In this document: piece by piece, positions 4,911 to 49,316 of the stretch
Layout of the letters: the number at the start of each line of letters is the position of its first letter
Position numbering within the stretch: position 1 is the first letter of the stretch
Assembly: GCA_965240325.2 (NCBI GenBank)
Contig: OZ251249.1
Span: 62,001-126,000 of the forward strand
Length of the DNA stretch: 64,000 nucleotides
Direction: 5' to 3'
Origin: Rebecca billardiae RCC1528
Lineage: Eukaryota > Protista > Haptophyta
Notes under the pieces: generated by a model
The model's input: only the letters and a program-made list of their open reading frames with translations
Databases searched by the model: none
Told to the model about the DNA's origin: nothing
Program-made: the position numbers and the translations under genes

Positions 4911-5039
4911 AGCTCGGCGGCGTACCACACTCGACGAGGCAGTTTGGGCTCGCTCACCGGCACGCCAAGGAAGCTTCCGGCCGGACAAGGGCGGCGATTG
5001 GTGATTCGGATACAAGTTTACTAAGAATAAGAGACGCAC

Positions 5040-6147: not shown

Positions 6148-6265
6148 GACGCACACAGCTCAGGCAGGCGAGATTGACGCCCGCCAACAAGTAAGGGGTT
6201 AAGCCACTATATAACTGTCAGGCAGCCGCCATCGTGCGGCGACGTGCCCGCGGCCGACGTGCGCG

Positions 6266-6410
6266 AATTTGTGCGACGGCGGCAGCGATGAGGTCGCGGT
6301 CCCCGGCCGCTCCGACGCGCTCTTGACTTCCGCGTGGGACGTGCGGAGGTCAAGAACCCATCCTACTCGTCGCCGGTGCCAACCTCGCCGCTAGCGGCGT
6401 CGCACAAATT
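6266..6410. other. ~145-nt imperfect hairpin (small MITE-like or structured RNA)
   Basis: Outer stem AATTTGTGCGACG/CGTCGCACAAATT; inner stem TCTTGACTTCCGC/GCGGAGGTCAAGA. Confidence 0.6.
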
Positions 6411-6692
6411 TGATGATTGGTACCTTGGGCATGGCCCGCGGCCCGCATGCCAGGTCCGCGCGGCGCTCGGTGGGCAAGCGAGCCAAGGGGCGCAGCGAGT
6501 CCGGTGCGGCTGTCGTACGGGTCGAGCGCGAGCGCCGAGTCGCAGCCGCGCGCGCGCCGCGCCGCTGGCGCCGGGTCGCCCGGGGGAGAAGGCGCAGCTG
6601 CAGTGCTCCTCTGCCATCGCGCGATCCGCCGGCAGAAAGACCAGACTTTGCGCCCAGTTTTGACCTAGTATGATGACTCGGTACCGCCCAGC

Positions 6693-7800
6693 CAAGGGAG
6701 TTCTTCAAAGACTGGTGCCCGCGCCCCAGTGGCGCGCTCGGCGGATGTTGGGACTCACCTTTTTGCCCGGCGCCCTGCGGCGGCTGCGGCGAGGGCGTGC
6801 TCCGCTGGCGGGGCGAGCGCACGGGGCACGGCGCTGCGGGCGCGGATGTGCCCGCGAAGCCGGCGCGTGCAGACGGGCTGTTGCGGGAGAGTATTCGGCG
6901 CCCTCCTGCGCCGCGCGACTTGCGCCACGCCTCTTTCGCCTCGGCTCAGAGCAGCGCGCACGCACGCGCCGCCTCAAGGCCAGCCTTGCCGCGCCGCAGC
7001 CGGTCGCGCGCGCGCCGTGCGCGGCGTGGTCGGGAAGGAACGGGCGATGCTGCCGGGCGAGATGGCGACATCATGTGCGCACGACATGCCGCCCCGCGGC
7101 GCCTTGATGAGCGTGTCGTCGGTCTGTTTGCATGCCTCTTCGACTTGTCACAAATGGTGTGCACAGCCTCGCGGTCGTGACCCTTGTCGGGACGATCATT
7201 GAGACACAGAACAGTTCCAGACGGCCGCGCGGGCTACTCTTGCATCAGGGTGTTCATCACCGCGTGGTCATGTAGAAGTGCTGGGTGCGACGCTTTCCTC
7301 GCGCTGATGCTCTTTCATCATCTTCCTCGAGCTCAGGTCTGGCTTCAGGCACGACAAGTAATCAGCACTCGTCAACAGCCGTGCGGATCCGTTCTCGTGC
7401 CCTTTCGCGGCGTGGCGAGGCGGCATGTCGTGCGCTCATGCCGTCGCCATCTCGCCCGGCAGCAGCGCCCGCTCCTTCCCGACCACGCCGCGCACGGCGC
7501 ACGCGCGGCCAGCTGCGGCGCGGCAAGGCTGGCCTTGAGGCGGCGCGTGCGTGCGCGCTGCTCTGAGCCGAGGCGAAAGAGGCGTGGCGCAAGTCGCGCG
7601 GCGCAGGAGGGCGCCAGATGCTCTCCCGCAACAGCCCGTCCGCACGCGCCGGCTTCGCGGGCACATCCGCGCCCGCAGCGCCGTGCCCCGTGCGCTCCCC
7701 CCGCCAGCGGAGCACGCCATCGCCGCCGCCCGCCGCAGGCCGCGGGCAAAAATATGTGTGCTCGGCACATCCGCCGAGCGCGCCCTTTGACTCCGCGTGG
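6693..7800. mobile_element. Second, more diverged copy of the foldback MITE, in opposite orientation
   Basis: Starts CAAGGGAG at 6693. Arms are homologous to 5040-6147, and the spacer ~7100-7420 is the reverse complement of ~5440-5745. The right end is eroded and no TSD was recovered. Confidence 0.75.
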
Positions 7801-17224: not shown

Positions 17225-17520
17225 GTACTACGACCGTGTGACGCGCCCGGACGCTGCGCGCATATACCGGCCGCAGCGGCCCGTGCCCGGTGCTCGGACC
17301 GTGATGACGACCGGGTGGCGGGACGAGACTGCTGCGCTTATATTATTCCGCCGCGAGCAGGCGCAGCAGACTCCGTGATGGAGCAACCTACCGTCGCGCA
17401 CACTCCTCAGACTCAGTGCGAGTCTGTCAATCATCATAGCAATAAGCCAGCGCAGTCACATCATCAACTACCGCGCCGGCGGATGTCAGCAGCTCGGACG
17501 AACTCCGCAGCGCGGTACAG
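17225..17520 (+). repeat. Dispersed repeat; empty-site paralog of 33365-33420 + 37420-37700
   Basis: cccggacgctgcgcgcatata|ccggccgcagcggcc... is contiguous here but split by a ~4-kb insertion at 33421-37419 in the other copy. Confidence 0.85.
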
Positions 17521-24719: not shown

Positions 24720-29596
<4,877 letters not shown>

Positions 29597-29609
29597 TATA
29601 TATATAATG

Positions 29610-32600
29610 CACAGCGCAGGATTCCGGCGGGAAAAGATGTCGTAAGGCCCCCCGCCGCGCGCGGAAATTCAGTATGGCTGCCGACGACGCGGCGAGGGCG
29701 CGGCGACGCGCGCGCGCGATCCCGGACGACTCGAATGAATTTCCAAACCGGCGCTGGGCAGGCCCCAGCCATCGCTCGTCGCGTTTTGGCCGTGTTGCAA
29801 CTGGCCCGCGGAGCAGCCGACGAGCAACGTTGTCAGGTGAGCGCTCGTGCACGCGACTCAGATGTGCCCACTGCATGCACTGGCCAAGACTTGGGCGTGG
29901 ATATGTGCGAGACGTACCAAGTGTCTCAGCCAGCCACCGTGTACCACGGACAGGCCTGGCTCAGGGCCCTGCCGAATTGATTTCAGCGTCGCGATGAGCT
30001 GCGCGGTGATCGCTGCTCGGCTCTGGCAGCCAGTTGGTTCCACGTCCTCGTCAACGCCGGCTCATCTGCGTGGTGGAGAGCTTCTTAAGGGCACGTTCGT
30101 GGTCAACGGATGCGCATGAGCCTGTAGGGCCCCTTCGTCCGTCTCGCCCCGCCGTTCAAGCGCTCTGGCCCTGTTCGCGCTCGTGCTTGCACTCGTCGGC
30201 AAAGGAGCCATTGCCAAGGTGATCGTGCACGTGTGCGCGCGCGCGATGCGGCGCACGAGGCTGACCCTCGCGATGATATTCTAGCTGCGGCCCTGCAATT
30301 AGGCCGAACGCTGAACTCACCGTCAATGCGTGCCGTCCATCGCGTGCTCCGCAGGTTCGCAATCACTCGCGGCAGCGGTGAATGCAGCACTCAATCCGTG
30401 ATTGCGGTAGCGTGGAGCATCTGCTCGTCTCGGCTGAGCTCCGCTCGGGACAGAGGGCGAACTCACGATGGACGAAGCTGGACACGTCCAGGTGAGCGTA
30501 CGCAGGTAGCCACCGTTGCGTGCGACAGCCCCGACCAACCCGCTCCAGCCGCTGTCGGCCCGAGAAGAGCCCTGCCGCGGCGCAGACGATACGCGCTGCG
30601 GCGGGCGCTCTGCCTTGCTCAGCTTGCGACTCGCCTGGCTCCTGCCTCACATGGCGGTGGGCGCGCCCAATACGCGCAGCAGGCGGGTCGGCGCAGGTGG
30701 CCTGTCGCCTCTGGCATCGCCCAAGCTGGCAGCCCTGCCACCGCCCCATCAGCCCGCCTTCGGCGCTGGCCGTCGGCGGCGGGCCACACGCGCGGCAGTG
30801 GGCCACCGCTGGCCGCGCTCGCGCGAGCGCGCAGCAGGTGGCTCGTCAGCGTCGGCGGTCTGCCGCTGCAGCCCGCCTTCGAGCGGTCTGCCACGCCACC
30901 GCAGCACTGCGCGCCGTCGACGCTGGCGGCCAGCTTCTGCCCAACAGAGCTCAGGTCGGCACGCCGCCGTTGATGGCACTGGGTCTGGAGTGGTCGTCGT
31001 CGACGCGGGCGACGGTGGGCGCGGTGGAGGCTACGGCGCGATTGGCGGCGCCGCTGCCGAGCGAGGCGGGCGGGCTCGCGCTGGCGGCAGACTGTGACCG
31101 TGACTGCCGGATGGCGCGGCGGGCTCGGCGGCCGAGTCGGCGGCGCCGCCGCACGGCGATGGCAGCGGCGCGGTCCGCGCCTGCGCGCGGCCGTCGTCAT
31201 TCATATCCGCGCAGTCGCGCACCGTCAGCGGCCGCGGGCCGCGCCGTGCTCGGTGCTGCGCGCGTGATTCGTCGTGTCTCGTGAACGTCGTCAGTCTCAG
31301 CAGTCGGACGACGTGCCAGCACGCTGACACAGACTATACCTGACTCTGACGACCTGACGGCTGATTTATGCCGCTGCCCGGCCGCCGCCGGCTGGCCCGC
31401 GTGGCTCGGCCGGCATCGTGGCCCCGGCCGGCGGGCCGCGTCGCCAGCGCGCCGCCCGCGGCCGCGGCCGCGCGGGGCCGGGAACCGTGGGCAGTGCGTG
31501 TGGCTGCGCCAGCGGCAGCGGGTCGTCATCTGCGGTGCCAGTGCGCGACTTATTAGCGGATGCGCTCATCAGCAGTGACGACCTGGGCGAGTCTTGAGTC
31601 TGATGATCGACGACGAGTCTGGTCGGGTGCTGACGACTATACTAATAATCCGCGGCGCGTCGACAGCTTCCCTCCGCGCCGAGCCGAGTGCCTGAGTGAT
31701 TACCGCGGTGCCCGAGTCACTACTGAGCCGAGTCACACCTGGGTGCCGAAGTCGTAGGCGCGGCGAGCACGCAAGCATGCGATGCGTCTTGTCCACCGCC
31801 CGGCCTGCGTGCGCCATCGCCGTCTTTGCGCGGCCGACTCGAGCTGTCTGCTGCGCGGTCGCACGACCAGCATGGCCGCCTCGCTGCTAGAGCCAGACCG
31901 GTGCAGCACCACGGCAAGTGTGCTCGCACAACACTCGCAACGATCGAGTGCGGCGATGGGCGAGCTGCGCCTTGGGTATGGCTGCGACGTTGAAGAGAGT
32001 GCCGTGCCCCATCACAGCCCTCGTGCCGAGGTACACGCGCCCGTGAATATGCGCGCTCTCGGTCATCGGCATCTCCGCGCGCTCGAGACAGCGGATGCGC
32101 TGGCCGAGACCGGATGGACGTGTGCAGCCAGGGCTCCGTCAGCTGCAAGTTGTCAACTGCGCGCACGACACGCGGGTTTCGGGCGAGAATTGTCCATAAG
32201 TCGGTGATGCTCTTGCCATGGCAGATGCGCCGCATGCCGTCCAGCGCATCGTCGCCGAGCCGAGGGGTCGCTGCGCGCGCCACGACGGTCGAGCGACTGC
32301 CGCTGATCATCAGGTGTAGGCGCCCATGGCACGTGCGCGCGTCCACGCGGTGCAGCGAGTGCCCAAGGTGCGTCGAATGGCCCGATCGAGGCGGGGTGCA
32401 CTCCTCTGGAGGGTACGTCACTGCTCAGCCGCAGAGCCGCGGGCAGCTCGTTCGTCTCCACCCCGTCCCACCGTCAGGTACTCGCTCGACTTGATCGTCG
32501 ACTCGTCGCTCTGCAGCAGCGCAGCTGTGTTGCGCACGCGTCTGGAACCAGCACGCATGGTCTTGGTGCCGGTTGGCGTCGATATACCAGAGCCCACATC

Positions 32601-33211
32601 ACGTGATATGCGCCGCACCAGTCGTTGCCCGCCAGGCCCTCATCCGGCTTCGCCATGGCCTGCGCGACGGTCGGTCGGATCGCGGCGAGCGGTTGGGCGG
32701 GGGTGGGGTCACTCGACGTTTGTGTCGTGCTTCGTGCAGTTTTTGCGCTGCAGGGCGCGCGGACCACGGCAATCGCATGGCAGCCCTGACCCCAGCAACA
32801 ACCACTTATTCACCGAACCCCGCCAGATACCAGCTTCTCGCGCCGCGCGTGTCGCAAGCCGCACACCAGCCATTTCTCGAGCGGTCGGTGCACGCGTGGG
32901 CACATTGGCCGATCGACGAGCCGGTGGCGAGCCTCTACCGCGGGGTAGTAGTGGGGAACACAACAGCACACATGCACATCAACAGCGATCGATCGAACGC
33001 GCCGGCGCTGGTCGGCATCGCCGCCGTCTTCGCTCGCCCCAGGGTCGAGAAGCCCGTCGGGAGCGCACTTTCGCGCGACGCCGCCGTCCGAACGCGCCTC
33101 GTCGCGACCGTTCGGGCGACCGGAGGCCATTTCGGGCTAGACCATTTTCGGCGATTTTCCCGGATATTACCTTACGACACTGGAAAATCGGATCCCTGCG
33201 CTGTGGTCGTG
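29610..33211. mobile_element. Non-autonomous DNA element with CAC..GTG ends, bipartite imperfect TIRs and 5-bp TSD (Transib/CMC-like)
   Basis: Left end CACAGCGCAGGATTCC..TGTCGTAAGG; right end (reverse complement) CACGACCACAGCGCAGGGATCC..TGTCGTAAGG. TAATG at 29605-29609 and 33212-33216. The interior is decayed coding-like DNA. Confidence 0.65.
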
Positions 33212-33313: not shown

Positions 33314-33483
33314 CTGCATCATCACTTGCGATCGATTATTATAGTATATAGAGTAGTACGTGACGACGATCGGACTACTACCGTGTGCCACGCGGTCAGC
33401 CCGGACGCTGCGCGCATATACAGGCAATCGCGGGCAATAATAAGGACGAGCTGTCACGTTAAGAAACTGGGGCGCTTGCTATC

Positions 33484-36400
33484 TGTCAGGGAACGCGTCT
33501 CGAGGCTTGACGGTCGCGAGGTCGGTCGACGGCTTCGGCTGTTGTTTGCGGTGGTGAGCTCAGCGTGTTTTGAGTGATCGGCTCATGTTTCGTTCACGAG
33601 TTTCGGAAGCATCTAGAATGCTTCCAGATGCCGCCGCCAGCCATGCTGTCCTGCTGTATTTTAGGATGAGGTTCAGGTTGATTTTGGAGGATTTTGTGCG
33701 AGCGCCGCCGCAGCGGTCGCGCCGCCACTGTGTGACTGCGAGTAAAATGTTGGATTGGAAATTGGAAATCACTGTAGATTGGCGATTCCTTTGACACCCC
33801 CCCTCAATCCAATATGCGCTCGTCTGTGAGGACTAAGCTTGGATTATGAGTGATTTTGGGCTTGGTATTGTTTGTGCATCTGTGTGCATGAGTGAATTGG
33901 AGTCAGTAATGGTTGCCAATGCCAGGATACGGGTCATGTGCTGGGACTTCCGTGTGACGGTTTTGGGTAACCCGAGTCAGTCCTGGGCTTATTTGCACCA
34001 TATGTTCACTCTTTGGCCTTGATTTTGGACCTTGTTATTGGGTCATGCCCTGCCTTGATAGTTAATCATAGGCATCCGGAGCAGGAATATCCAGGAAATG
34101 GATACGCTCCTTGGGAAATTTGTTGGCTCCCTTGTTTTTGCCTTTGTTGTAATTGTTGGCGTTGGGGCGTAGCTCTGGGTGGAGCTTCCAACACTGCTGG
34201 GCAGTATGGTTCTTGAGACCACAGTGAGTGCACCGTTTGCCGGTGTCCGAGTTATTCGGCCCGCTCTCGCCATTGGCTGGAGCCTTTTGGGCCTGAGCGG
34301 CGAAGACTTCGGCGCCCTCAAAGTCACCGCGTCGCCGCGTGCCTTGCTGATAATCAGCATTTTGGCGTATCTTGGAATAATTTTCGGTCTCTCTCCCCTT
34401 GGTATTGTTCTGATGGAGTAGCTTCATTGAGCCGTGCCGTTTGTAGGCATCTTCCATCTGGGCCATTATCTGGTCAGTGTTATCCACACATTGCTCGGGC
34501 GTGAGCGCTCCGAAGTGCGAGATAACTGACTCGTAGACTTGGGGATGGTCGTGCATGCTGTTATACAGCTTGAAGACCAACATCGTAGCATCGTCCAGAT
34601 TCCCATATCGAGATGAGCGGACTTGCTCGACGGATTTCTTGATAATGTCCGATGCGCCAATGGGCGACACCTTTGTCGGGTATAACTTCAGGAATTCATC
34701 CCTGAGTTCGGACATAGTTGTGATCTTGAGCTCGCGCTCAAATATCTGTAGCAGCAGCGCCAGATCCAAGTAGTTCTTGGTCGGATCGCTGATGTGCAGC
34801 TTCGATTCCAGATAGGCGAATAACTGAGGCTCAATAGAGTCCTTCAGCTGCTTGAATATCGCTGCCGCAGATCGATCGTAGACCGATCCGATCTTGTTGG
34901 CGTCAGCGTTGTCAGCCTTGTATGGATCGATTTTGGCTGCGTCTTTCACCCATTTGTCTTTGGCAATGAGTTGAAAGCCGGATAGCTTGCTATTTTTGGG
35001 CTCCATTATGTCAGGTGTGACATCTGAGGATTTGCCCTTGTAGTAGGTGCTCACTTCTGCGAGTGCATCCCGTATCGCGCTGTGTACCGCGCGCTTGGAT
35101 TTCAGAGCCGACTGTGTCAGCTTGTGTGTGGCGGGTGTATCCACTCCTGCCGAGGATTCGCGTGCCATGAACACACGTTCCTTCTTGGTTGGATTAGAGT
35201 CTGTGACTCCTCCTTCGATGACTATCCAGTCACGTTTCTTCGACTCAAGTGCATTGGTCGATGTGTCGCGCGCGCTCTGTGGCGATTCGCGCTCTACCTT
35301 CGAGCGAGGAGTGACCCTCGTCGAGGCTGTGGTGCCTTCTTTGGGCTTCTTCACGCTCGTTCTGTCCAGCGGTGATGCATGTGCATCCGCGGCAGCTTCG
35401 GCGGAATACTCTTGCTTGCAAGAGTGTGGCGTTGTGATGGCTGACGCAGCTGATGCATGCGCACGCGCGTCGCGCTCGCCAACTTGGTTTTGCTGCGGCT
35501 TTGCCGTCAAGCAGGTGTATGATGCCCCCCCTGCATCGCATGCGCTTCCTACGTTCGACGCGAGTCGATACGTGCCAGACGAGGACTCTGCCGTCTCTGC
35601 GGCGGTCATCTCGCGGCTGCTTGTGTCGCTCGTGGCGAGCAGCTCGGCTTCGGAAGCCATCGTGAGGCTGGTAATTTTGGGGTAAACGTATTTGTTTGGG
35701 TCAGGCGCATCAACAATAAATGCGGCCGCTGACTTAATGCTTGAGTTCGCTGTGACAGAGTCACGCGTCGTCGCATCTTGGAGCATAGTTTGCTCTGCCA
35801 GACCATACAGGTCGTTTGAGTCGCACTCATCGGTGCTAACAAGGTCATCGTTCGATCGGTCAGACTCAGACACAGAGTCGTGCGAGCGAGGCTGCAGACT
35901 GACTGCGGTCACGACCGCGCTGTCATTGGCGGCGGCCAGAAGGCCAGCACGCCGAGCAGCGTTGGCAGGCTCGAGGGCCTCGACGGTCGGAGCGGCATCA
36001 GCGGCAGCAGCGTCGAGCGCTACATCTGCCCCGGAACGCTCGGTGACCTCGTTCGATGACTCGGAGGCCGCAAGGCACTCCTTGAGCTGCGGGCTCTCAG
36101 CCGCGCGCTCTTGAACCGCGCTCGCGGGCGCAGAGTCCCGGGCGGTAGTTGTTGAGATCCCCTGCGCAACGACGTGCGTGCGGATGGAGTGGCGCGATGG
36201 CGGGGGGATGCGAGCGGCAACGCTCCTCCTCACCGCGCTGTGCGCGAACCTCCTCCTCAAGGTGATCCTTGATGTCGGCTCGAGGCCTTGCGTGCGATGC
36301 AGCATTGCGCGCATACGACACGATGCTGCCTGAGTTCAGGTCAGCGATGTTGCCAGGCCCGGAGGCGCTGGAGATGGGCTTGCGGAGAAGCGTGAGCTTC

Positions 36401-36945
36401 TCGCCTTGCCGGTTCTTCTCAGCCTGCATGCCCCTCAGGGCAGCCGCGAGGTAGTCTGGCGTGCGCTTGCGCGCAACCGCCGATGAGCCGCGCGGCATTG
36501 CCGCGCGCTCGGCCACGCCTGGCTTCAACCCAATGAGGGGAGCAACTGGGGCGGGCTGATGGCCGTTCACGTCCTTGCCGCTGTTCTCATCGTCTCCATC
36601 CTTGCCCAAGTTCTCCCAGCACCGTGCTAGCATGTCAGGGAACGCGTCTCGAGGCTTGACGGTCGCGAGGTCGGTCGACGGCTTCGGCTGTTGTTTGCGG
36701 TGGTGAGCTCAGCGTGTTTTGAGTGATCGGCTCATGTTTCGTTCACGAGTTTCGGAAGCATCTAGAATGCTTCCAGATGCCGCCGCCAGCCATGCTGTCC
36801 TGCTGTATTTTAGGATGAGGTTCAGGTTGATTTTGGAGGATTTTGTGCGAGCGCCGCCGCAGCGGTCGCGCCGCCACTGTGTGACTGCGAGTAAAATGTT
36901 GGATTGGAAATTGGAAATCACTGTAGATTGGCGATTCCTTTGACA
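33484..36945 (-). mobile_element. Gag-only (TR-GAG-like) Copia-type LTR retroelement
   Basis: 313-bp TG..CA LTRs at 33484-33796 and 36633-36945, with no difference seen. TSD CTATC at 33479-33483 and 36946-36950. Polypurine tract at ~33797-33805. No pol motifs. Confidence 0.92.
34062..36314 (-). CDS. gag: Gag-like protein with CCHC zinc knuckle
   Basis: CTHCGLKNHTAQQCWKLHPELRP is a Copia-type knuckle. The overlapping upstream ORF 36097..36633 may be a frameshifted N-terminus. Confidence 0.8.
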   Translation of the reverse strand: MRAMLHRTQGLEPTSRITLRRRFAHSAVRRSVAARIPPPSRHSIRTHVVAQGISTTTARDSAPASAVQERAAESPQLKECLAASESSNEVTERSGADVALDAAAADAAPTVEALEPANAARRAGLLAAANDSAVVTAVSLQPRSHDSVSESDRSNDDLVSTDECDSNDLYGLAEQTMLQDATTRDSVTANSSIKSAAAFIVDAPDPNKYVYPKITSLTMASEAELLATSDTSSREMTAAETAESSSGTYRLASNVGSACDAGGASYTCLTAKPQQNQVGERDARAHASAASAITTPHSCKQEYSAEAAADAHASPLDRTSVKKPKEGTTASTRVTPRSKVERESPQSARDTSTNALESKKRDWIVIEGGVTDSNPTKKERVFMARESSAGVDTPATHKLTQSALKSKRAVHSAIRDALAEVSTYYKGKSSDVTPDIMEPKNSKLSGFQLIAKDKWVKDAAKIDPYKADNADANKIGSVYDRSAAAIFKQLKDSIEPQLFAYLESKLHISDPTKNYLDLALLLQIFERELKITTMSELRDEFLKLYPTKVSPIGASDIIKKSVEQVRSSRYGNLDDATMLVFKLYNSMHDHPQVYESVISHFGALTPEQCVDNTDQIMAQMEDAYKRHGSMKLLHQNNTKGRETENYSKIRQNADYQQGTRRRGDFEGAEVFAAQAQKAPANGESGPNNSDTGKRCTHCGLKNHTAQQCWKLHPELRPNANNYNKGKNKGANKFPKERIHFLDIPAPDAYD

Positions 36946-38256
36946 CTATCTGCGGATCTTCATCTGGCCTAGACGAAACTGAGACTAGCGATTGGCTGGT
37001 TCGCTATACGCATAGTCACACTAAGAAACCGGGACTACTGTCGTCGCGGCTGACGAGTGCCGGTCCGCCGAGGCGCAGTGCCAGAGTGGGACCGGCGGCG
37101 CGCGGCCCGACTACGAGTACAGGCCAAGGATTCCCGACTTCTCCTGATGACTGACTCCTGGCCAGTGCGCGCAGCATCCATGCAACATCATGCCAGATTT
37201 GCTCCAAAATGGCCCAAATTTTTTCGTCGGCCTCGCAGGCCGGGCCTAACTAGTCACTCAGCTGGGCCGGCTCAGCCCCCCTGCGCCCCCCTCGCCTGCG
37301 CGGCGGGCGGACCTAGCTAAGAAACTGAGACTCCGTAGGCGGTCGGGCTACCGAACGGCTAAGGAACCGAGACTAGCCGTGAGATCTCTGACTTCTGCTT
37401 ATTGCCCGCGATCAGCCTGTACCGGCCGCAGCGGCCACGGTGCCCGGTGCTCGGACCGTGATGACGACCGGGTGGCGGGACGAGACTGCTGCGCTTATTA
37501 TATTATTCCGCCGCGAGCCAGGCGCAGCAGACTCTGATGGCGGGAGCAACCTACTCGCGCACACTCCTCAGTAACTCAGTGCGAGTCAGTGACTCATCAG
37601 CAAAGTATAAGCAGCGCAGTCATCGACATCGTCATCAACTACCGCGCCGCGGCGGATGTCAGCGTCAGCAGCTCGGACGAACTCCGCGCGCGCGCGGTCA
37701 GTGTCACTCATGCTGCGGCACCCGAGCGCGCACGGACGGCAGACGCGCGAGGCGACTGCCGACTCGGCCGAGGAGTACCGCGGCGTGACACGCGGCACTG
37801 TCGGCTTACTACGGTAGCTCGGCCGTCGGCATTCGGATGACGAATTATACGATGACAGCGGAAACGCAGGATCGATCGTAGTCGACCGGGCATGGCTCGG
37901 CTGCTGCATGCTGGCTCGATCGCCGTGCTGATGCTGCTGCCATCCGCCGGCGGCCGCGCGCGGCCGCAGCGAGCGCGAGCGCAGGCGGCGCCGCAGCCGC
38001 GGCCGAGTGCAGCCGCGCGGCAGTCGTCCCCCGCGCGGCGGCCGGCGCCCGAGCCATCGCGGCGCTTCGCGCCACCGCTCAGCCGCGCGCGGGGCAGTCG
38101 TGTACACGTCTGCTGTCTGCAACACAGCGACGGACCCCGCCCGGACACAGCGGCGTGCGGGCCGCCCGAGGCGCGGCGCGTGCGGGTGTGAAGCTGCGAC
38201 GGCGCCCGGTAAATGTTTAAAAGAACGCTGGAAAATCGCCAGGGACCCACCTATCA

Positions 38257-38457
38257 GCCCCGGGTGGTGCGCGTAGTGCCCGAGCATCCGGCCGCTGTGC
38301 TGCCCCTGCGCCTGCTGCTGCTGCTGCTGCTGCTGCTGCGCCAGCTGCTGCTGCAGCGCCGCCGCGCCGTGCAGCTGCGCGGCGAGCTGCGCGGCCGCGT
38401 GCGCCTGCGCCTGCGCTTGCGCGTGCGCGTGCGCCTGCGCCGCCGCGTGGTGGTGCG
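38257..38457 (-). repeat. Duplicated exon fragment of the 46411-49888 gene (source ~46569-46784)
   Basis: Shared gccccgggtggt..tagtgcccgagcatccggccg.. and the peptide QAHAAAQLAA..QQQLAQQQ..GQHxGRMLGHY. Confidence 0.85.
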
Positions 38458-38467
38458 ACAGCGATCG

Positions 38468-39486
38468 ATGCTGTTGCTGGCCTCGCGCAAGCTGCACGCG
38501 CGCAACCTCCCGCGCTCGGACTCGGATCGGGCGGCGGGCGTGTGCTCGCAGAACCACTCCATCACGATCCCCGCGATGTCGAGGGCGGTAGCGGAGAGTA
38601 TCTGCACCAACCTCGGGATGCCCGCGCCGACCGCCTCGACCGACACGCCGTTTACTCGCGCAATAAGAGCGGCAAGACGACGCGCACGTGGCTGCAGCAG
38701 GACTGCGCGGCCATGCGCGAGAACTGGCGGCTGAAGTCGGCGGGCCCGGCGGCGGCGGCGCGGTGCCGTGGGATGGGCAAGGTGCTGCAGCAGGGGACGG
38801 TGGCAGCGGTGATCATCCTGCCGCTGGAGCTCCACCACGTGCAGCTGTGGTCGAAAGAGCACGGGATGTACTCGGAGAAGCTTACGCTGGCCTTCCGCGC
38901 GGCGCGCCTCGACCTGCGCACGGACACGATCCATTGGCCGGCGTGGGGGCAGGGTGAGCGCCCCACCCGGCGCCCGCTGCGCCGCGCGCCAACGCGAGCA
39001 CTGGCAGAGACCCGTGCGTACCCCACGCGCGCGCCCCGCTCGCCGCGCAGAGGAGCCGACAGCGGAGGTGATGGCGATCCACACAGCACACGTGCGCGCG
39101 GTGGCCCAGGAGCTCGCTCGCCAACTTCAGCTCGCAGTGCGCCGAGCACGACGGCAAGCACATCAAGACGGACTTCCAGCGCAACTCGTGCAAAACCAAG
39201 GGCACGACGCGGCGGCGGAAGGACGGCCGCGTCATCCAGTTCCGGAGCCGCATCGAGTCGACCTTCCGCTTCACGTCGGCGCGGAAGATGATCGGCAAGA
39301 AGCAGAAGAAGACCAAGGGCATGAAGCTCGAGACGAACTGCAAGCTGCTCAAGCAGGCCAGGGCCGCCGCGGCGCGGGCCCGCAAGGTGCGTGCTGCGGC
39401 GCGCGCACTGGCCATACTGCACGCGTATGCTCATTGCTCACTCGCCCACCTACGCCCCGATGCGCGCGCCGCGCGCGCAGGCGTGA
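38468..39486 (+). pseudogene. C-terminal half of a RAG1/Transib-like DDE transposase (two introns, frameshifts)
   Basis: ...HVQLWSKE...WGQ[intron ~38954-39050]EEPTAEVMAIHTAHVRAVAQEL[frameshift]LANFSSQCAEHDGKHIKTDFQRNSCKTKG..., followed by a basic tail and a second intron ~39387-39480. Confidence 0.6.
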
Positions 39487-40161
39487 ATGAGCTCGCGGTT
39501 CTCCGCCGTCGGCTGCGCCCGTCACCGCGCCGCGGGGCAGGCTCAAGATTGACGCTGTTCGCGGCGCTGCGCACGGCGCGCGGGTCTGAGATGATAGCCG
39601 ACTCGTCACCTGCTGCATTCCGAACACATCTAGTGCCGGTACCCGTCAGCAGCCAGCAGCGGGGCGCGGCGGCCGTGCGAGAGAGGCTGGGGGGCGGCCG
39701 GCGGCCGTCGGCCGCCATTGTTTGTCCGCTCCGCCGCTGGGGCGTGTTCACTGTGCAAGCAGTAAAACTTAAAATAAGCCGCGCGCGCCGCCGAACCGAA
39801 AGATATATGGCGGGGTAGTTTTTCAGAGTTTTAAATTCCCCTTTATAACGGGCTCCGGGTGATCAGGCTGGCGGCCGAAGCCTCCAGCCCTACCCTGGCC
39901 AGCCCCCAACCAACCACCACCCTCACCCAACCTCAAACCACTGACCGAGACACCTAGTGTCTTGACACCACTCCACTGTGGACAGCCCGCCTCCAGAGGG
40001 GGCGGGGGTATGCCATTGCCAACAGCATACGAGCCCAACACTGTGGGGTGGTCCCAGGTACAAGCAGTGTACGGCCTTGCAATTCAAGATCATCGAGTTT
40101 GAGCCGAGTCGGCAGCAGGGGCACCCCCTAGGGTGCCCCAGTGTGGGCAGAGGGCCAGCCA

Positions 40162-42531
40162 CTAGCCGATCCCTGCGCGGGGAAGGGAGCTGAGGGGACT
40201 GTCATCGAGCCCAGTAGCTGGGCAGGGGTCTGGGCCACTGGCCCTGGCAGCGAGGCGCCTGTATTTCACTCGTGCAGCTATGGAGGCAGAGGGGGTCATG
40301 TCAGACATGTGTGCTACATCGGGCATCAAGTCCGGGCGTGGGCCGCTGTAGGAAGCAAGCAAAGTGGTGGCGATGGCTAATACACCTGGGGAGGTGTCGT
40401 TCGCTCGCCTCTTCCTGCTGCGCTGTGCAGGGGGTAGCGTGCTCCGCTGCGGCACATTTGCCTGGCGGGGTGGGCAGTGTCGTTTGGGCGGGGGGCTGTC
40501 CTGCTGCGCTTGACTAGGAGGAGGCAGCCCGCGCCTGGGGGCTGCCGGTGGCCTGGCAGAGCCAGCAGGCGGCTGTGCGGCCTGCTGTCCAGTGTCTGAC
40601 TGTGTAAGGTCGCTGTGAGCTCCGTTACCAGTGTGACTGCCAGCAGCCGGGTCTGCCTCCATCTCAGGGCCCCCATGTGTCAACATATTGTCCGGCGGAC
40701 CCACATTGCTGCGAGCCAGCGGGGTGGCATATTGGAGCTGCCATGCCACAAGAGGTGTGGCAGGCTGCAGAGGCCACGCAATCACCATAGGGAGGGGGCG
40801 AGCACGCTGAAGGGGCCACGCCTGCGAGAGTGACTGGGGGCGCACGTGGTGACCGCGCGCTATGGGCTGGTGCAGGTTGGCCTGCCCCGCGCCTGCCTGC
40901 CAGCCCTGGCCAGCCTGGGCAGGGGGTTGCTGCTGGATGACAGGTGGTCCTTGCAACTGATTATTCATGGCAATCGCCCCTCCTGGGCCTGCCTGTGCCT
41001 GTGGGGGTGGGGGCTGCCCCCCTGGGCCGTGCCCAGGCGGCGGCCGAAGCTCCCTGGCATGTCGAAGGAGACGTCCTGCCTTCGACAGCTGGGAGTCCAC
41101 GTCCTTGCGGGCCTGCATGATGCCTAGCCCTGCCTTCAGTAAGGCCACGTGCATGGTCCTGCCGAGATGCACGTTGCCCCCCACAGTGGTCTTCAGTGTG
41201 CTGGGCACCCTGCCCATGAGAGCAGCCCCAGAGCACACGTGACGTGCCAAGTTCCATGCTGCAGCCTGTCCCTGCATGAATGGCTCAATTACATGCGATA
41301 CGCTTCTGGCAGCAGCCATTCGGTAGGCATCGACCTCAGGGCACTCAGAGAAGAGGTGGTGCTCAGTATCTGGCGCTGGATGTAGCAGTGGAGCATGATC
41401 GCAGAGGGGGCAGGCATCGCTAAATGCCGCCCCCGACTGGAATCGCACAGAGAGCAACGTCGGGTCTCGCAAGGCAGCAGGCTGCAGGAACTCATATCCG
41501 TGGTGGAGTATGTAGTAGGCAGGCACAGTGTTGGCCTGCCAGGTCCGTAGTACGCCAGTGGAGGCCTCTGGCCACACGCCGGTCCATTCACCCACCAAGT
41601 CACAGCTGGACTTGGTGACTTGCAGGTGGGTTGCCCTTTGTGATAGCACACTGTCATACACAAGGGGCTTGATTCGGCCTGCCACTGGCTCTCCATCGGC
41701 CAGCTGTACCATTGCATGGGAACCCGCATTTGGGTGGCCACCTCTCTTGTGAGTCACACAGGGGGTTGCGGGGTCAGAGCAGCAGTGCTTGGCCCCCGCA
41801 TCGCTGCATGCGTTGAGCAGGGTTTTGGGGTTCATCCCTGCTTGGCGCAAAGCCGCCACACTGTGTTGGCTGACAGTGCAGTGCTGGTCCCCCGGGTTGT
41901 GTGTGAGGCTGAGGTGTCGCGCAGCAGCATCGTCAGCAGAGTGCGCCTTGACATGCTCGAATGAAGTGGTGCTGCCATGCCGCAAGCGGCGCCAGCCCAC
42001 CAGGCTCATGACCCTGGCGATGTATGGGGCGTACGTGTGGTGCCCCTGCCGAAGCCGTCGGTCCCAGGGGTCGTTTTGCCACATTTCGGCGGCCTTTACC
42101 ATTTCCTGCAGGTCAGTGCACACCAGCAGGTTGGCGGTGGGGTCTATCTGCACCAATGCATCTGTGATGGCCATGAATTCGGCTGGGCCTGGTGCCTGGT
42201 GCCCCGCGAACTTGGAGCAATACACATGCACAGGGGCAGTGTAATTGTTGCCGTTGAAGAAGGAAAAGGCACACGCTGCCTGCCCGTTCTCTGCATCGAA
42301 TGAGCCGTCCGTGGCCACCATTAGCATGCCAGGCACAGGAAGTGCAGGCAGATGGCGGGGATTGGGTGGATCACAGACAGTACGCTTGGCGGCAGGCACG
42401 TGCCCCAGGTACCTGTAGTAGCTCTGGTCGGTCAGGACTGCCCTCAGCATATCCCTCACTGCCAGTATCACCGCCGGGCGGGACCTATGTGGCAGTGAGG
42501 ACAGCTCCGCATAGAACGCAGTGGAGACCAT
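40162..42531 (-). CDS. LINE ORF2 C-terminal part (frameshifted): RNase H plus zinc knuckle
   Basis: ATDGS, AEFMAI, CTD, HVKAH and NACSDAGAK form the RNase H set; CPLC..EHHLFSEC is the knuckle. Confidence 0.85.
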   Translation of the reverse strand: MVSTAFYAELSSLPHRSRPAVILAVRDMLRAVLTDQSYYRYLGHVPAAKRTVCDPPNPRHLPALPVPGMLMVATDGSFDAENGQAACAFSFFNGNNYTAPVHVYCSKFAGHQAPGPAEFMAITDALVQIDPTANLLVCTDLQEMVKAAEMWQNDPWDRRLRQGHHTYAPYIARVMSLVGWRRLRHGSTTSFEHVKAHSADDAAARHLSLTHNPGDQHCTVSQHSVAALRQAGMNPKTLLNACSDAGAKHCCSDPATPCVTHKRGGHPNAGSHAMVQLADGEPVAGRIKPLVYDSVLSQRATHLQVTKSSCDLVGEWTGVWPEASTGVLRTWQANTVPAYYILHHGYEFLQPAALRDPTLLSVRFQSGAAFSDACPLCDHAPLLHPAPDTEHHLFSECPEVDAYRMAAARSVSHVIEPFMQGQAAAWNLARHVCSGAALMGRVPSTLKTTVGGNVHLGRTMHVALLKAGLGIMQARKDVDSQLSKAGRLLRHARELRPPPGHGPGGQPPPPQAQAGPGGAIAMNNQLQGPPVIQQQPPAQAGQGWQAGAGQANLHQPIARGHHVRPQSLSQAWPLQRARPLPMVIAWPLQPATPLVAWQLQYATPLARSNVGPPDNMLTHGGPEMEADPAAGSHTGNGAHSDLTQSDTGQQAAQPPAGSARPPAAPRRGLPPPSQAQQDSPPPKRHCPPRQANVPQRSTLPPAQRSRKRRANDTSPGVLAIATTLLASYSGPRPDLMPDVAHMSDMTPSASIAARVKYRRLAARASGPDPCPATGLDDSPLSSLPRAGIG

Positions 42532-45500
42532 CTAGCTGTCTTGGTGGCTGTTGCATGAGCACACCTAGCAACACGTGCTGGGTACCGTCCACCAGTGAGT
42601 GCTCGATCCGGCTGAGCATCTCTCCGTTCGCGTCAGGAAGGCCGTGTGGTGCCAAGCAGGGGAGGGCAGCTGCCCCTGGCATTGCGGCGAGTCTTGTATA
42701 TGCCCTGTGGGTCCGGTTTGTGGCCAGCATCCCGAGCCCGGGGGCCAGCTGCTGCATCAGCTTGCTGCCGAGATTCACTTCGGATGGGAGCAGTGCCCAC
42801 CCCATGCGTCGTACAGAATTTCTCCCGGTGACGATGGTGGAGGCAAATGTAGAGGCGCCGCGTACGCGCGCCCGTGCTGGGTGCTCTACTGATTGCAGGG
42901 CACCCATGGCTGCCATGGACGTGCGCGCACATAGCCCACGTGGGTCATCTGCCAGGAAGTGGTAGTACGCGTGTGCCTGGACACTCTCCAGGTGCGCATG
43001 TAGATTGATGAGGCCTAGGCCCAGGAACTGGGGAGGAAAGCACGCTGCCTCGTATGCGATGCGCCCTGGCAGGGCAGCACTCCTGACCACTGGCTCCACC
43101 ATGAGGCTTTGCAGCTGGTTGAGTCTGCCCCTGGACATGCCAACCACCTCGTAGAAGTAGAATAATATCGACGTGACATCCCACACAGTGAGCAGCTTTT
43201 TGGTCTCGGTGCAGCAGTCAGCTGCCTGCACCCGCGCGGCGGCTTTGGCCACTCTGGCCTTGAGACTGGCGAACATCCTGTCAGTTGCCAGATGAATGTT
43301 GGTCACCACCCCTGCATACGTGAAGTATTCGCCATCCTGCAACGTGTCTATGAGAGCAGCTTGTCCAGTTGCCCTGTTGATGACCTGTATTGGGTCCACC
43401 TGTGCGTGCCCAGGGGGCACATACACTGCCACCTTGGATTTGGGGTAGTTGGGCTCCATATCATAGTACCACAAAAAGTCGACGAGGTCCTGCATCATGG
43501 CTGTGATGTCTGCTCTGCTGTGCGCGTACAAATTGATATCGTCCATGATAGCAGTGGCCACCACTGTCACCTGCCCTGCAGCAGCGTCCGCGTCGTCTGA
43601 GCTGCATTTGGACTGTACATGGTACCCGCCATGCCTGCTCTTCAGGTACCTGAGGAACATGTTGATGAACAGGCAGAACTTAGTGGAGCTAGCAGGGTCA
43701 CCTTGCTTCGTGCCACACAGTAAGCGTACACTATCAGTGGGCCCATATGGCGTCCTCACCACCACATCATGCCCCTCTCCTAAGGAGCGCATGAGGGTAT
43801 AAAACATGGCTGGGTACCCATGGCTGCGGAAGCCATCCTCAATGCCTTGGTATGGCACAGTGTCGAAGGCTTTTTGAATGTCCATCAGTGCACAAAACAG
43901 CGTGCGCCGGGAACGGTGTGCATCGGCCACCACATTGGCAAAGACAGCGACTTGCTGTACCACTTGCCCACCCTCTCTGCTGGCAGCCTGTTCCGGCTCG
44001 ATTAGCCTGAGCCTGTCGGACGCAGCTTGCATGACGTTGTTTTGGTGTCTTGCCATGATTTTGTACACCACACTGTTGAGTGTTATGCCCCTGTAATTCC
44101 CGAGCACGTGCATATCCCCGTGCTTGTGTAGTGAGACAACCTCCCCTTGCTGGAGTCCGTCCAGAAGAGTCCCTGTCGCGTACATGACTGCGCAGAGATT
44201 AGATATAATAGTGGCGATCGGGCCAGGGTGTCCTGTCCCCTGTCCCCTGGCTGCCCCCTGCTGGGCACCAGTCTGCTGTGCAGCGTGCTGCCTGTGTGTG
44301 CGCGTGCCGCTTGGCAGTACAGGCTCGTCGCGCTCGGCATGGTGGCCTTCCAAGAGCTTGAGTACATTGTACTGTATGCCATCTGGACCAGGTGCCGAGT
44401 TGCCTCCCACCTCAGATGTGATGATGTGCCGTATTTGCGCGGGGGTGGGTGGCGTTCCGAGGGCGGTGACATATGCGTCCCCCGGATCAGTATGCCATGC
44501 GGCCCTAATGTCGTGCCACATATGACCTCCAGCGTGCCAAGGAGGCCTGCCCCCGGGCCGAGTGTATTGTCGCTCCAGAAGGCCCTGGTAGTGCCCCCTG
44601 TACTCCGATTTCACATCGTCAACGCTGGTGGCCAGTGCCCCATCGCTCCTTCTGACGATGGTAGGCAGTGTGATGGGGTCCTTGGCATACACCATGACAC
44701 GCAATTTATGCGAGTTCTTTTTGGTCTCAACCTTGACTTTGGCGAACCACGCCCTCTTTTGTTCCTCGGCCTGCTGCTGCCACACAGCTTTCACTTGCGC
44801 GCGGCTCGTCCTGCATTGCTGCTGCACGATTTGTCTCCAGCGCTGGTGGGACAGAAATGGCCCTACCGGCACCTGTCCGTGAGGCCCCATTGCCACTTGT
44901 ATCCAGTGCTGGGACTGTGCAGCTCCAGTGCCCCAGGTCCGCTCGTACCTGCGCACTGCTCTGCGCACTGCTGGACCAGCTGGCAGCCCAGCAGCTGCTC
45001 TGTTAGCCAGAATATCGCCTGCATGCAGCGCAGCAGAAGCAGCATCTGCTTTGGATTTGTGTTGACCCGCTGCTGCGCCCGCTGTGGCTGGTCGGATCTT
45101 CAGGGGCGTGTCTGGTTGTCCGTCATATACACTGGGTTGCTCCAGTACAGTTGCCATGTCCCTGGTGGCCAGTGTGGTCAGGTGTCTCAGCGTTGTCAGC
45201 GCAGTGGCTGCTGTCGTCACCAGCGAAGGTTGCACCAGCATATGTGCCGGCACTGGGGCCTCAGCAAAGTCCGCAATGTGTAGTGGCAGGCCCTCCATCC
45301 ACATCGCAAGCAGCTGTTTGGCTTTATTCCAGTCAGGTGACGTCTTTCCCAGGTCCACGCGTATGTGCCTGGGAGGTTGCACTGGTGAGGCCAGTACTGC
45401 AGCAGCGCCGCGCAGTGCCACCGAGTGAATCCGGCCATATATTGGGACGTGTGCTCCTGGCATTCGCAGGGTGGCCTTTTCCGATATGTCCATGTGTCCG

Positions 45501-45961
45501 GTGTGCCCAACTGTGTCCATGTTGGAGAATATGTAGTCAATCACAGATCGATCCGCCCCATTGCCGTCCTCCCTGTGTGCAGTGATGAATGTGGGCCTTT
45601 CGAGCGTGTCCCATCGTGTGGTGCTGGGTATTTGGTTGAAGAGGTGGTCAGCGTCTGTCATGTATGTGCGGAACACTACCTTGGGGGTAGCCCCCTCCCC
45701 TGCGTTGCTGTCGTGCATGTGCCCATTTCCATCGCATGCTACCAATTGCAGCCTGGCAGCATGCCTGGCTACGTGCACAGCATGAGTCCGCATGTTGCCA
45801 GCTGTGGGAAGGCCTATGCATGTGCCTGTACGAAGGTGGTTGACTATGTGTGGAAGCAGCAGGTGCTGCCGTTCCTCATCATGCGGGTTGTAGAAGCAGC
45901 ACACCCACATGGGGACAGCCAGTGACGAAATATACGCTCGAATTGATGTAGCAGTGGGCAC
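42485..45961 (-). CDS. LINE ORF2 N-terminal part: partial APE endonuclease plus reverse transcriptase
   Basis: APE motifs CDGN, PTF, SVIDYIF and AHVPI; RT motifs SAPGPDGI, NYRGITL, DIQKAFDTV, GTKQGDPAS, IMDD and FTYAGV. Confidence 0.88.
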   Translation of the reverse strand: MPTATSIRAYISSLAVPMWVCCFYNPHDEERQHLLLPHIVNHLRTGTCIGLPTAGNMRTHAVHVARHAARLQLVACDGNGHMHDSNAGEGATPKVVFRTYMTDADHLFNQIPSTTRWDTLERPTFITAHREDGNGADRSVIDYIFSNMDTVGHTGHMDISEKATLRMPGAHVPIYGRIHSVALRGAAAVLASPVQPPRHIRVDLGKTSPDWNKAKQLLAMWMEGLPLHIADFAEAPVPAHMLVQPSLVTTAATALTTLRHLTTLATRDMATVLEQPSVYDGQPDTPLKIRPATAGAAAGQHKSKADAASAALHAGDILANRAAAGLPAGPAVRRAVRRYERTWGTGAAQSQHWIQVAMGPHGQVPVGPFLSHQRWRQIVQQQCRTSRAQVKAVWQQQAEEQKRAWFAKVKVETKKNSHKLRVMVYAKDPITLPTIVRRSDGALATSVDDVKSEYRGHYQGLLERQYTRPGGRPPWHAGGHMWHDIRAAWHTDPGDAYVTALGTPPTPAQIRHIITSEVGGNSAPGPDGIQYNVLKLLEGHHAERDEPVLPSGTRTHRQHAAQQTGAQQGAARGQGTGHPGPIATIISNLCAVMYATGTLLDGLQQGEVVSLHKHGDMHVLGNYRGITLNSVVYKIMARHQNNVMQAASDRLRLIEPEQAASREGGQVVQQVAVFANVVADAHRSRRTLFCALMDIQKAFDTVPYQGIEDGFRSHGYPAMFYTLMRSLGEGHDVVVRTPYGPTDSVRLLCGTKQGDPASSTKFCLFINMFLRYLKSRHGGYHVQSKCSSDDADAAAGQVTVVATAIMDDINLYAHSRADITAMMQDLVDFLWYYDMEPNYPKSKVAVYVPPGHAQVDPIQVINRATGQAALIDTLQDGEYFTYAGVVTNIHLATDRMFASLKARVAKAAARVQAADCCTETKKLLTVWDVTSILFYFYEVVGMSRGRLNQLQSLMVEPVVRSAALPGRIAYEAACFPPQFLGLGLINLHAHLESVQAHAYYHFLADDPRGLCARTSMAAMGALQSVEHPARARVRGASTFASTIVTGRNSVRRMGWALLPSEVNLGSKLMQQLAPGLGMLATNRTHRAYTRLAAMPGAAALPCLAPHGLPDANGEMLSRIEHSLVDGTQHVLLGVLMQQPPRQLDGLHCVLCGAVLTAT

Positions 45962-46410: not shown

Positions 46411-49316
46411 TCACTGCTGCGGCGGCTGCGGCGGCAGCGGCGGCGGCTGCGAGCCGCCAAACATGTCCATGCCGCTCGGGTCGTAGTAGGCGCCGCCCAT
46501 GTGCAGCCCGTCGGCGTAGCCGCCGCCGCCGAACACGGCGCCGCCGCCGAACGGCGCGAGCCCGTGGTGCCCCGGGTGGTAGTGCCCGAGCATCCGGCCG
46601 CCGTGCTGCCCGTGCTGCTGCGCCTGCGCCTGCGCCTGCGCCTGCTGCTGCTGCGCCAGCTGCTGCTGCAGCGCGGCGAGCTGCGCGGCCGCGTGCGCCT
46701 GCGCTTGCGCGTGCGCGTGCGCGTGCGCCTGCGCGTGCGCGTGGGCGTGCGCCTGCGCCTGCGCCTGCGCCGCGTACTGGTGCGCCGGCGGCGCCTGGCC
46801 CCCGGCCCCCGGCGGCGGGCCGCCGCCGGGCTCAAACGGCCGGCCGCCAAACGCGCCGCCGCCGCCGGACGCGTCGTACTGCGCGCCGCCGCCGTACATC
46901 GCGCCGTCCGCCCACGGCGGCGCGTTGGCACTCATGCCGCTGCCGCCGCCCACGAGGCCGAGGCCGGCGACCCACTGCGCGCCGCCGCCCGAGCCAAACC
47001 CGCCGCCCGCCGTCGAGTGCGGCGGCTGCTGCGGCTGCGGCTGCGGCGGCGGAGGCTGCCGCGGCGGCGGCTGCGCCGGCTGCTGCGCCGGCGGCTGCCC
47101 GCCCCACATCACGCCGCCGCCGCCGCCGCCGTGCGAGCCGTCGGCCGCGGCCGCCGCGCTCGCGCCGCCGCCGCCGCCAAACAACCCGTGCGCCGCCGCG
47201 GCGGACGGGCCCGAGGACGCGGGCGGCTGGCCGACAGGGCCGCCGAGCGGCGCCCACGCGCCGCCCCCACCGCCCGCCGCCGCGGTGGGCGAGGGGCGGT
47301 CCATCTCGTCGAGGAGCCCGTTGGCGAGCAAAGCGGCGTGCACCGCCTGCGCCTCGTCGTCCATCAGGGCGCCAAAGCCGCCGTCCGCGCCGCCGCCGCC
47401 GCCGCCGCGCCCACCCCACAGCCCGCCGCCCAGCGCGCCGCCGTCCGCGCCCCAGCCGCCCATCGGCGGCGGCGCGTCCGGCGCCGCGCTCGCCGGCTGC
47501 TGCGCCGGCTGCGGCTGCTGCGGCGGCGACGGCGGTTGCTGCGGCGGCTGCGGCTGCGGCTGCGGCGGCGGCGACTGCGGCTGCGGCGGTGGCGCGGCCG
47601 CGCCCGCCGCGCTCACCGCCGCCGCGGGCTGCGCCGCCGTCTGCGGCGGCTGCGCGCCGCCCGCCGCCGGCTGCTGCGCGCCGACGGGCAGCGCGTTGGC
47701 CGCGACCGCCGCCGCGCCCGCGGCGGTGCAGTGCGCCCACGGCGCCTGCGCGGAGCGTCGCGCGCGCCGCGGGGTGCGCGTGAGCTGGCGTCGTGGGCGC
47801 GCGTCGCGGGGTCGCGGGGTCGCGCGCGCACCGGTCGGGTCACGGCGGGCGGCCCCGCGTTGGCGCCGTCCGCCGCCGCGGCCGCGGCCGCGAGCGCGGC
47901 CGCGGGCGGCGCCTGGCTCGCGGCCTGCAGCAGCTGCGCGTACGGCGGCAGCGCGCCGCCCTCAAAGGTGCCGACGCACGGGATGCCGCACAGGCTCAGC
48001 TTGTGCTGCCCGCGCACCGCCGCCGCCGCGTTCTCCACCGACGCCTGCCGCGCGCGCGCGCGCGATTCGCGCTTCGCATGAGAGCCGGTGCGCGCGCGCG
48101 ACCGCGCGCGCGCGCCGCGCGGTGCGCGCACCCACGAGTCGAGGATGAGCGCGGCGACGGGGCCGCTGAGCACGAGCTCGCGCCCGCCCGCGGGCGCGTT
48201 GGCGGGCGGCTGCAGCGGCAGCGCCGCGCTCGCCCACCAGCGCGCCCCGCCGCGCGCGCCCCCCAGCGGCAGCACGCGCACCAGCCCGCGCAGCCGGCCG
48301 AGCGCGTGCAGCAGTCCGGGCTCGCCCAGCCGGCCCGCGGCGAGGCCGAACCACTCCGCCGCCCAGCCCGAGCCCAGCGACGCGACGGAGCCCTGCGCGC
48401 GCGCGCGGGGGCGCGCGCCCTCGCGTCAGAGCCGCCCCTGCGCGTCTGCGCGCGTGTCTGCGCGCGCGCGCGCGCCTCACCTTGTGCACGATCCGAATGT
48501 CGAGCCGGGGCGCGGAGGCGAGCGAGGCGTCGTCGGACGAGCCGTCCGCCGCGGGGGCGCCCTCGGCGCCGTCGTTCCACTCGCCCGCCGCGGCGAGCAG
48601 CTCGTCCTCCGACTCGCTCTTCAGGATCAGGTTGGCCTGCGCGCGCTCGGCGCGCAGCGCGCGCATCGCGCGGCGGCGGCGCAGGCTCAGCGCGGAGCCG
48701 CGAGGCCGCGGAGCGGGCGGGCGGCGGCGATGGCGCGTGCGCGCACGAGGTACTTGGAGAGGTCGCGCTTCCGCCGCGCGCCGCGCTTCTGGTTCACCTC
48801 CTCGCGCTTGGCGATGCGCAGCAGCTTGAGCGCCTGCGCGCGGCAGACAGGCGCGCGGCGCGCGGCGCACGCGTGAGCGGCGGGCGGCGGGCAGCGCGCG
48901 CAGCGCGCGGAGGGGGGCGGCGCACCTTGGACACGCCCTTCTGCTGCGCGAGGTCCTGCAGCTGCTGCGCGACGGGCGGCGAGATCGCCATGCTCTGCAG
49001 CAGCCCCACCAGCTGCGCCGACCACGCGCGCAGCTGCTCGGGCGTGAGCGGCGCGCCCGCCGGCCCGCCGAGCGCGCCGCCCTCCTCGCCGTCCGGGAAG
49101 GGGCACTGGTTGGCGCGGTGGCCGGGGCGGTTGCACGTGAAGCAGAGCTCCTCGTCGGCGGCGTTGGGCGCGCTGCCCCCGCCGCCCGCCGCGCCGCTCC
49201 CGCCGCGCCCGCCGCCGCCCGAGCCGCGCTGCGGCGCGTGGTGGCCGTTGGCCGCGCCGCCGCCGCCGCCGCCGCCGCCGCGCGAGCCCGCGCCGCCGCC
49301 GCGCCCGCCCGCGCCC

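Follow-up and report, generated by a model that had tools for sequence, protein, structure and literature searches.

A probable CMCT-clade transposon relic in Rebecca billardiae whose right end opens with the V(D)J heptamer

The locus raises the question of whether position 39755 of the window (the whole 64-kb stretch of DNA analysed) is the end of a transposon and whether this end resembles a 23-RSS, an antibody-gene recombination signal, beyond its first seven letters. The heptamer, spacer, and nonamer reported in the initial annotation are present on the minus strand, with CACAGTG at 39755–39749, 23 nt at 39748–39726, and ACAAACAAT at 39725–39717, which matches the RSS nonamer ACAAAAACC at six of nine positions. 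No other site of this quality was found within the 64-kb window. Using order-2 local shuffles, the probability of at least one such site per 64 kb was estimated to be 0.047 at a spacer of 23, 0.10 at a spacer of 12 or 23, and 0.23 when each of the two spacers was allowed to vary by 1 nt. With a chance of 4.7–23% per window, the motif by itself is therefore only mildly unusual. The boundaries and end features of the element, which were compared with a homologous (sister) family from metagenomes, are listed below.

38120–38122, plus strand: CAA, left copy of a probable 3-bp target duplication
38123–39755, plus strand: whole defective element of 1633 bp, with a firm right boundary and a probable left boundary
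38123–38129, plus strand: candidate left terminal heptamer CACAGCG, the sole CACAG start on the upstream side whose flank matches over at least 3 nt
38142–38147, plus strand: CGGACA block, common to the right end (39728–39723, minus strand) and not significant alone
39717–39725, minus strand: ACAAACAAT, with C at essential position 6, possibly lying within a family-specific second block
39726–39748, minus strand: 23-nt stretch from the heptamer to the A-rich block, with no significant similarity to the sister ends
39749–39755, minus strand: right terminal heptamer CACAGTG, identical to the heptamer that ends the sister family in 14 junctions
39756–39758, plus strand: CAA, right copy of the probable 3-bp target duplication

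The motif was said to lie past the stop of a transposase gene with its heptamer facing outward, which agrees with a stop codon at 39484–39486, 269 nt before the heptamer. The transposase that was presumed there is not intact, as its gene is frameshifted and internally deleted. The host genome is eukaryotic and very GC-rich with spliceosomal introns, and the remnant was resolved into the following parts.

38257–38463, no strand assigned: low-complexity segment, 78% identical to 46569–46790
38518–38953, plus strand: transposase exon remnant, with homology firm from 38770 and weaker and frame-ambiguous from 38518
38954–39050, plus strand: putative GT-AG intron, with its donor placed after a WPAWGxG motif, an arrangement shared with the sister family
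39051–39115, plus strand: short exon piece with the His motif H-x2-H, with a frameshift at approximately 39115
39114–39386, plus strand: C-terminal transposase exon, with a putative catalytic Glu codon at 39144–39146 in the motif AEHDG
39387–39486, plus strand: putative last intron (39387–39480) and stop TGA (39484–39486), from sequence inspection only

In the six-frame translation, the first exon ends in WPAWGQG at 38953. The stretch from the intron to the His motif is approximately 390 nt shorter in the window copy than in the sister elements; the window copy lacks CxxC, and its His spacing is H-x2-H versus H-x4-H in the sister family. Only the putative Glu of the DDE triad is recognisable, both in the window copy and in the sister elements. 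Judged from these lesions, the window copy cannot encode an active enzyme. The segment at 38257–38463 is probably captured or duplicated filler in the place expected for the 5' half of the transposase. It is coding-like and rich in Gln and Ala, and may represent a captured gene piece. A RAG2-like gene was thought to have no room in the element, and this held, as one remnant fills the 1.63 kb and the ORFs have no Pfam match. The 2.2-kb sister elements are likewise filled by a single gene, and their ORFs have no Pfam match.

The transposase exons were searched separately and not as a joined spliced model. In the Pfam and PDB sequence searches, neither the remnant nor the sister protein matched a curated family, RAG1, or Transib. 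Two structure models were of low confidence (pLDDT of 41 and 31), too poor for an informative fold search, which gave no link to RAG1 or Transib, and word-index protein searches using single exons as length-limited queries found nothing. In the Atlas feature search, the named clusters that came closest to the sister exon were RAG1_ZnH2 (0.86) and DUF4218 (0.84), which are leads only.

The relationship of the remnant was instead provided by the sister family, which consists of undescribed, multi-copy elements of 2.2 kb in ENA metagenomes. The set comprised the P0001 loci and its cluster (L001 and L003–L017), mostly from one ENA metagenome series. The C-terminal exon matched P0001 (43%, E 3.5e-5), the sole true relative in an exhaustive search, and the upstream exon matched the sister loci (42%, E 5e-13; 30% over 148 aa, E 1.5e-14). 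The intron position is the same in the sister family and the window remnant, and in the sister proteins, CRRC and HVMIAH precede CEHDG. A further candidate, P0002, was rejected because it is a repeat protein, and eight JGI matches to the sister-end pattern were rejected as chance because no transposase accompanied them. Several sister loci (L003:119-2322, L008:7-2258, L009:62-2272, L014, and L015) represent mosaic subfamilies swapping internal segments, and some copies appear to be inserted into one another.

Whether homology stops at the GTG was examined in the sister family as a proxy. At the right end, homology stops at CACTGTG in 14 junctions, each with a different flank, of which two or three are nested or mis-joined. 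The left ends also open with CACAGTG, and between L003 and L009, homology runs exactly from CACAGTG to CACAGTG. As the sister elements end exactly in CACAGTG on both sides and the flanks all differ, the heptamer is a true terminus throughout the lineage. The right terminus lies 343 nt past the stop in the sister family versus 269 nt in the window element. The window heptamer agrees with the sister terminus in its letters, its orientation, and its place relative to the gene; thus, 39755 is very likely the genuine right terminus of a defective element, and the claim of a transposon end was borne out. Its agreement with the antibody-gene recombination signal over the first seven letters is accounted for by its relatives, all of which end in this way.

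Copies of this exact family were sought in addition. No sibling copy was retrieved, and the sole sequencing run that shared any words with the window (X1, 7% of words) covered the flanking repeats only; its contigs contained nothing at 38474–39679 and no empty-site joint. A pattern search of viral contigs for sibling copies gave 0 matches, and scans of viral and JGI contigs for related loci found nothing. The boundary at 39755 thus rests on a relative and not on siblings.

For the left end, both the proposed candidate CACAGCG at 38123 and the CAA at the two flanks (38120–38122 and 39756–39758) were confirmed. Among 767 upstream CAC starts, no 5-nt flank match was found, and neither a 2-bp nor a 5-bp duplication paired with any other of these starts fits. 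A flank match of at least 3 nt occurs by chance at 1.1% of positions. Chapaev3 elements make 3-bp target duplications. We consider a left end at 38123 with a 3-bp duplication to be likely. The heptamer CACAGCG recurs 23 nt into the left end (38146); in one sister subfamily (L003:119 and 134), the heptamer also recurs in the left end, 15 nt in. The proposed sharing of CCCC..CGGACA by the two ends is present in the sequence, but a 6-mer common to both ends is no more than chance would give (P=0.43). CGGACA stands 12 nt from the left heptamer and 20 nt from the right heptamer.

These observations bear on how much of the motif belongs to an element at all. A chance cryptic RSS, unrelated to any element boundary, is very improbable: such sites do arise in 5–23% of the shuffled windows, and seven further exact CACAGTG sites occur at 39900–44000, but the place, orientation, and exact letters of this heptamer are those of the proven terminus of a homologous family. 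An element that is 5'-truncated or interrupted, with a real right end, a chance occurrence of CACAGCG at 38123 and of the CAA match, and a duplication of 0, 2, 3, or 5 bp, is unlikely, although it deserves more weight. CACAGYG is expected 0.18 times per 600 nt, the inner alignment of the left and right ends gives only P=0.16, and 38257–38463 is foreign filler. Both the sister scaffolds and run X1 speak for it, as the former show no duplication and the latter offers no empty site. All five sister scaffolds with both ends are of this kind; they are probably collapsed short-read assemblies of a many-copy repeat, which join the flanks of different insertions, and the duplication length is thus not settled by them. 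Truncation is less easily reconciled with the flank match, whose chance is only about 2% given two nearby candidate heptamers, and with the heptamer..CGGACA pattern, which was chosen post hoc and is confined to the two ends, in inverted orientation on either side of the remnant.

Functional RSS-like signals with asymmetric ends, of the kind found in subgroup I Transib or RAGL elements, are quite improbable here; in such a reading, the A-rich block at 23 nt would be bound by a nonamer-binding-type domain and paired with a left end of shorter spacer. A perfect heptamer with a 6/9 nonamer at exactly 23 nt is what such a signal would look like, and when the true end is taken as given, the chance of this nonamer is 0.3% at spacer 23 and approximately 2% over 12±1 and 23±1. 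The right end also carries AA at positions 34–35, matching the Transib TIR consensus (PMC1131882), CGGACA occurs at both ends with an offset of 8 nt, and asymmetric TIRs are known for AanRAGL (4/13) and ProtoRAG (27/31) (PMC9435367, PMC8289069). However, ACAAACAAT has A at nonamer position 5 and C at position 6, both of which were described as essential positions (PMC1131882), and AA at these positions is obtained only when the spacer is read as 22, with the score then falling to 3/9. The left end matches the nonamer at two of nine positions at 12 nt and at four of nine at best (13 nt), has TG at positions 34–35, and is offset from the right end by 8 rather than 11 nt; the duplication is 3 bp or undefined and not 5 bp. 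The sister right ends match the nonamer at only two or three of nine positions at spacer 23 with TT at positions 34–35 (TT, TG, or TC among the sister ends), and heptamer-N23-ACAAA is absent from every fetched sister locus. The sister family has a second block of its own, ATGT[A/C]AACT, placed symmetrically at 18/18 nt at both ends (P=0.0015). An apparent alignment of the AAAC block of the window with this block was not significant and was rejected.

Thus, the description of the site as 23-RSS-like found no support beyond the heptamer, and neither did that of asymmetric RSS-like ends. The expected paired left ends were found in the sister family with CACAGTG, while their second block turned out to be equally spaced and not asymmetric. 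As the signal beyond the heptamer is not common to the relatives, it does not speak for an ancestral form of the 12/23 signals. A RAG2-less, RAG1-like algal family with a functional nonamer-like block at 23 nt on the right and 15 nt on the left appears to be a long shot; if true, a spacing rule of the RSS kind would exist outside animals, being either of independent origin or very old.

As a whole, the observations are best explained by a CMCT-clade relic with a 3-bp CAA duplication and a coincidental nonamer likeness, with a probability of roughly 60%. In this reading, a cut-and-paste DDE transposon of this clade would have left a non-autonomous relic of 1.63 kb (38123–39755), with its right terminus at position 39755. 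An intact transposase from elsewhere in the genome would bind and pair both ends in trans and cut at the terminal CAC, and insertion by a short staggered cut would double the CAA; no RAG2-like partner would be involved. In this lineage, the ends would be bipartite, with a heptamer-like tip, a spacer, and a second block giving family specificity. ACAAACAAT would be either the second block of the family itself or unconstrained sequence, and its RSS-nonamer likeness at 23 nt would be coincidental. These steps of transposition are modelled on CMCT, Transib, and RAG biology, while the homology, the gene decay, and the terminus of the relative were observed directly.

Elsewhere in the window, another element that ends in CACAGCG (29610–33205) has an inner block of different sequence, TGTCGTAAGG, placed at 21 and 19 nt (P=0.0005). 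Together with the sister block, it suggests that bipartite ends whose second block differs from family to family are characteristic of the lineage. This element, read as 29610–33211, is located in a TA tract; beyond its right heptamer (33205) lie six extra letters, CACGAC when read inward, and then TAATG, a sequence also found in front of the left end, so that there is either a 5-bp duplication after a cut at the outer CAC or no duplication.

Other repeats were also found in the window. A non-LTR-type retroelement at 40162–45961 (minus strand) contains an ORF for reverse transcriptase (Pfam RVT_1, E 1.5e-17) and, after it, an ORF that opens RNase H-like by eye, and related copies occur in run X1. 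Two near-identical long terminal repeats at 33479–36950 accompany one 750-aa ORF with no Pfam match, and a 1518-aa ORF at 24902–29606 (minus strand) with a weak RVT_1 match (E 0.014) adjoins a TA tract. A dispersed repeat at 37420–37692, 84% identical to 17265–17514, lies immediately left of the element. Two long near-perfect inverted repeats at 5039–7759 (406 nt at 98% and 351 nt at 92%) are mutually related and foldback-like.

With the window element, an undescribed algal CMCT branch gains one defective copy, and the independent metagenomic sister family shows that CACAGTG, letter for letter the V(D)J heptamer, is a terminus of this branch, whereas each family has its own second block and spacing. 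This sets the heptamer, which is old, apart from the nonamer, which is specific to the family. Were siblings to keep one constant nonamer-like block behind spacers of unequal length, a single-gene transposase would allow the origin of the 12/23 rule to be tested.

Compared with known systems, the right end resembles a V(D)J 23-RSS in its exact heptamer, 23-nt spacing, and 6/9 nonamer, and differs in the changed nonamer position 6, the missing 12-RSS partner, and the lack of conservation among relatives. The RAGL, ProtoRAG, and AanRAGL elements share a heptamer-like tip and, as in this lineage, bipartite ends, and AanRAGL is also algal (PMC9435367, PMC8289069); the window element differs in having neither a RAG2-like gene nor a 5-bp duplication, and the sister family in having no asymmetry. 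With Transib, the element shares the CAC terminus, the RSS-like heptamer, AA at positions 34–35 of the right end, and a single gene with no RAG2; moreover, the HzTransib ends are described as showing a heptamer match with little or no nonamer match (PMC8289069). In contrast to Transib, the best candidate duplication is 3 bp instead of 5 bp, AA at 34–35 is missing from the left end of the window element and from all the sister ends, no similarity to the Transib structures in the PDB is detectable, and the window gene is spliced. Fungal EnSpm elements with CAC..GTG ends and a 3-bp TSD (PMC12730594) have the terminal CAC and the probable 3-bp duplication in common with the window element, and the likeness to these and to Chapaev3 is in end features only, with no sequence or profile link. 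Going by its letters, the end would work like a cut-and-paste end of the Transib/RAG1 type, while falling outside Transib and RAGL and fitting the broader CMCT (CACTA-Mirage-Chapaev-Transib) clade. This clade comprises EnSpm/CACTA, Mirage, Chapaev/Chapaev3, Transib, Plavaka, ESTA, and Lanisha, with a signature of C(2)C plus H(3-4)H lying between the second Asp and the last Glu, and with duplications of 2–5 bp overall, CAC..GTG ends with 3-bp duplications having been described (PMC12730594). The remnant differs from it in that no curated family matches in sequence, the first two Asp were not located, and the window copy is defective. It agrees with the clade in the CA..TG termini of both the window element and the sister family, in a probable duplication within the range of 2–5 bp, and in a His motif shortly before the last Glu, to which the sister family adds CxxC and H-x4-H; we thus assign the remnant to the CMCT clade as a defective member.
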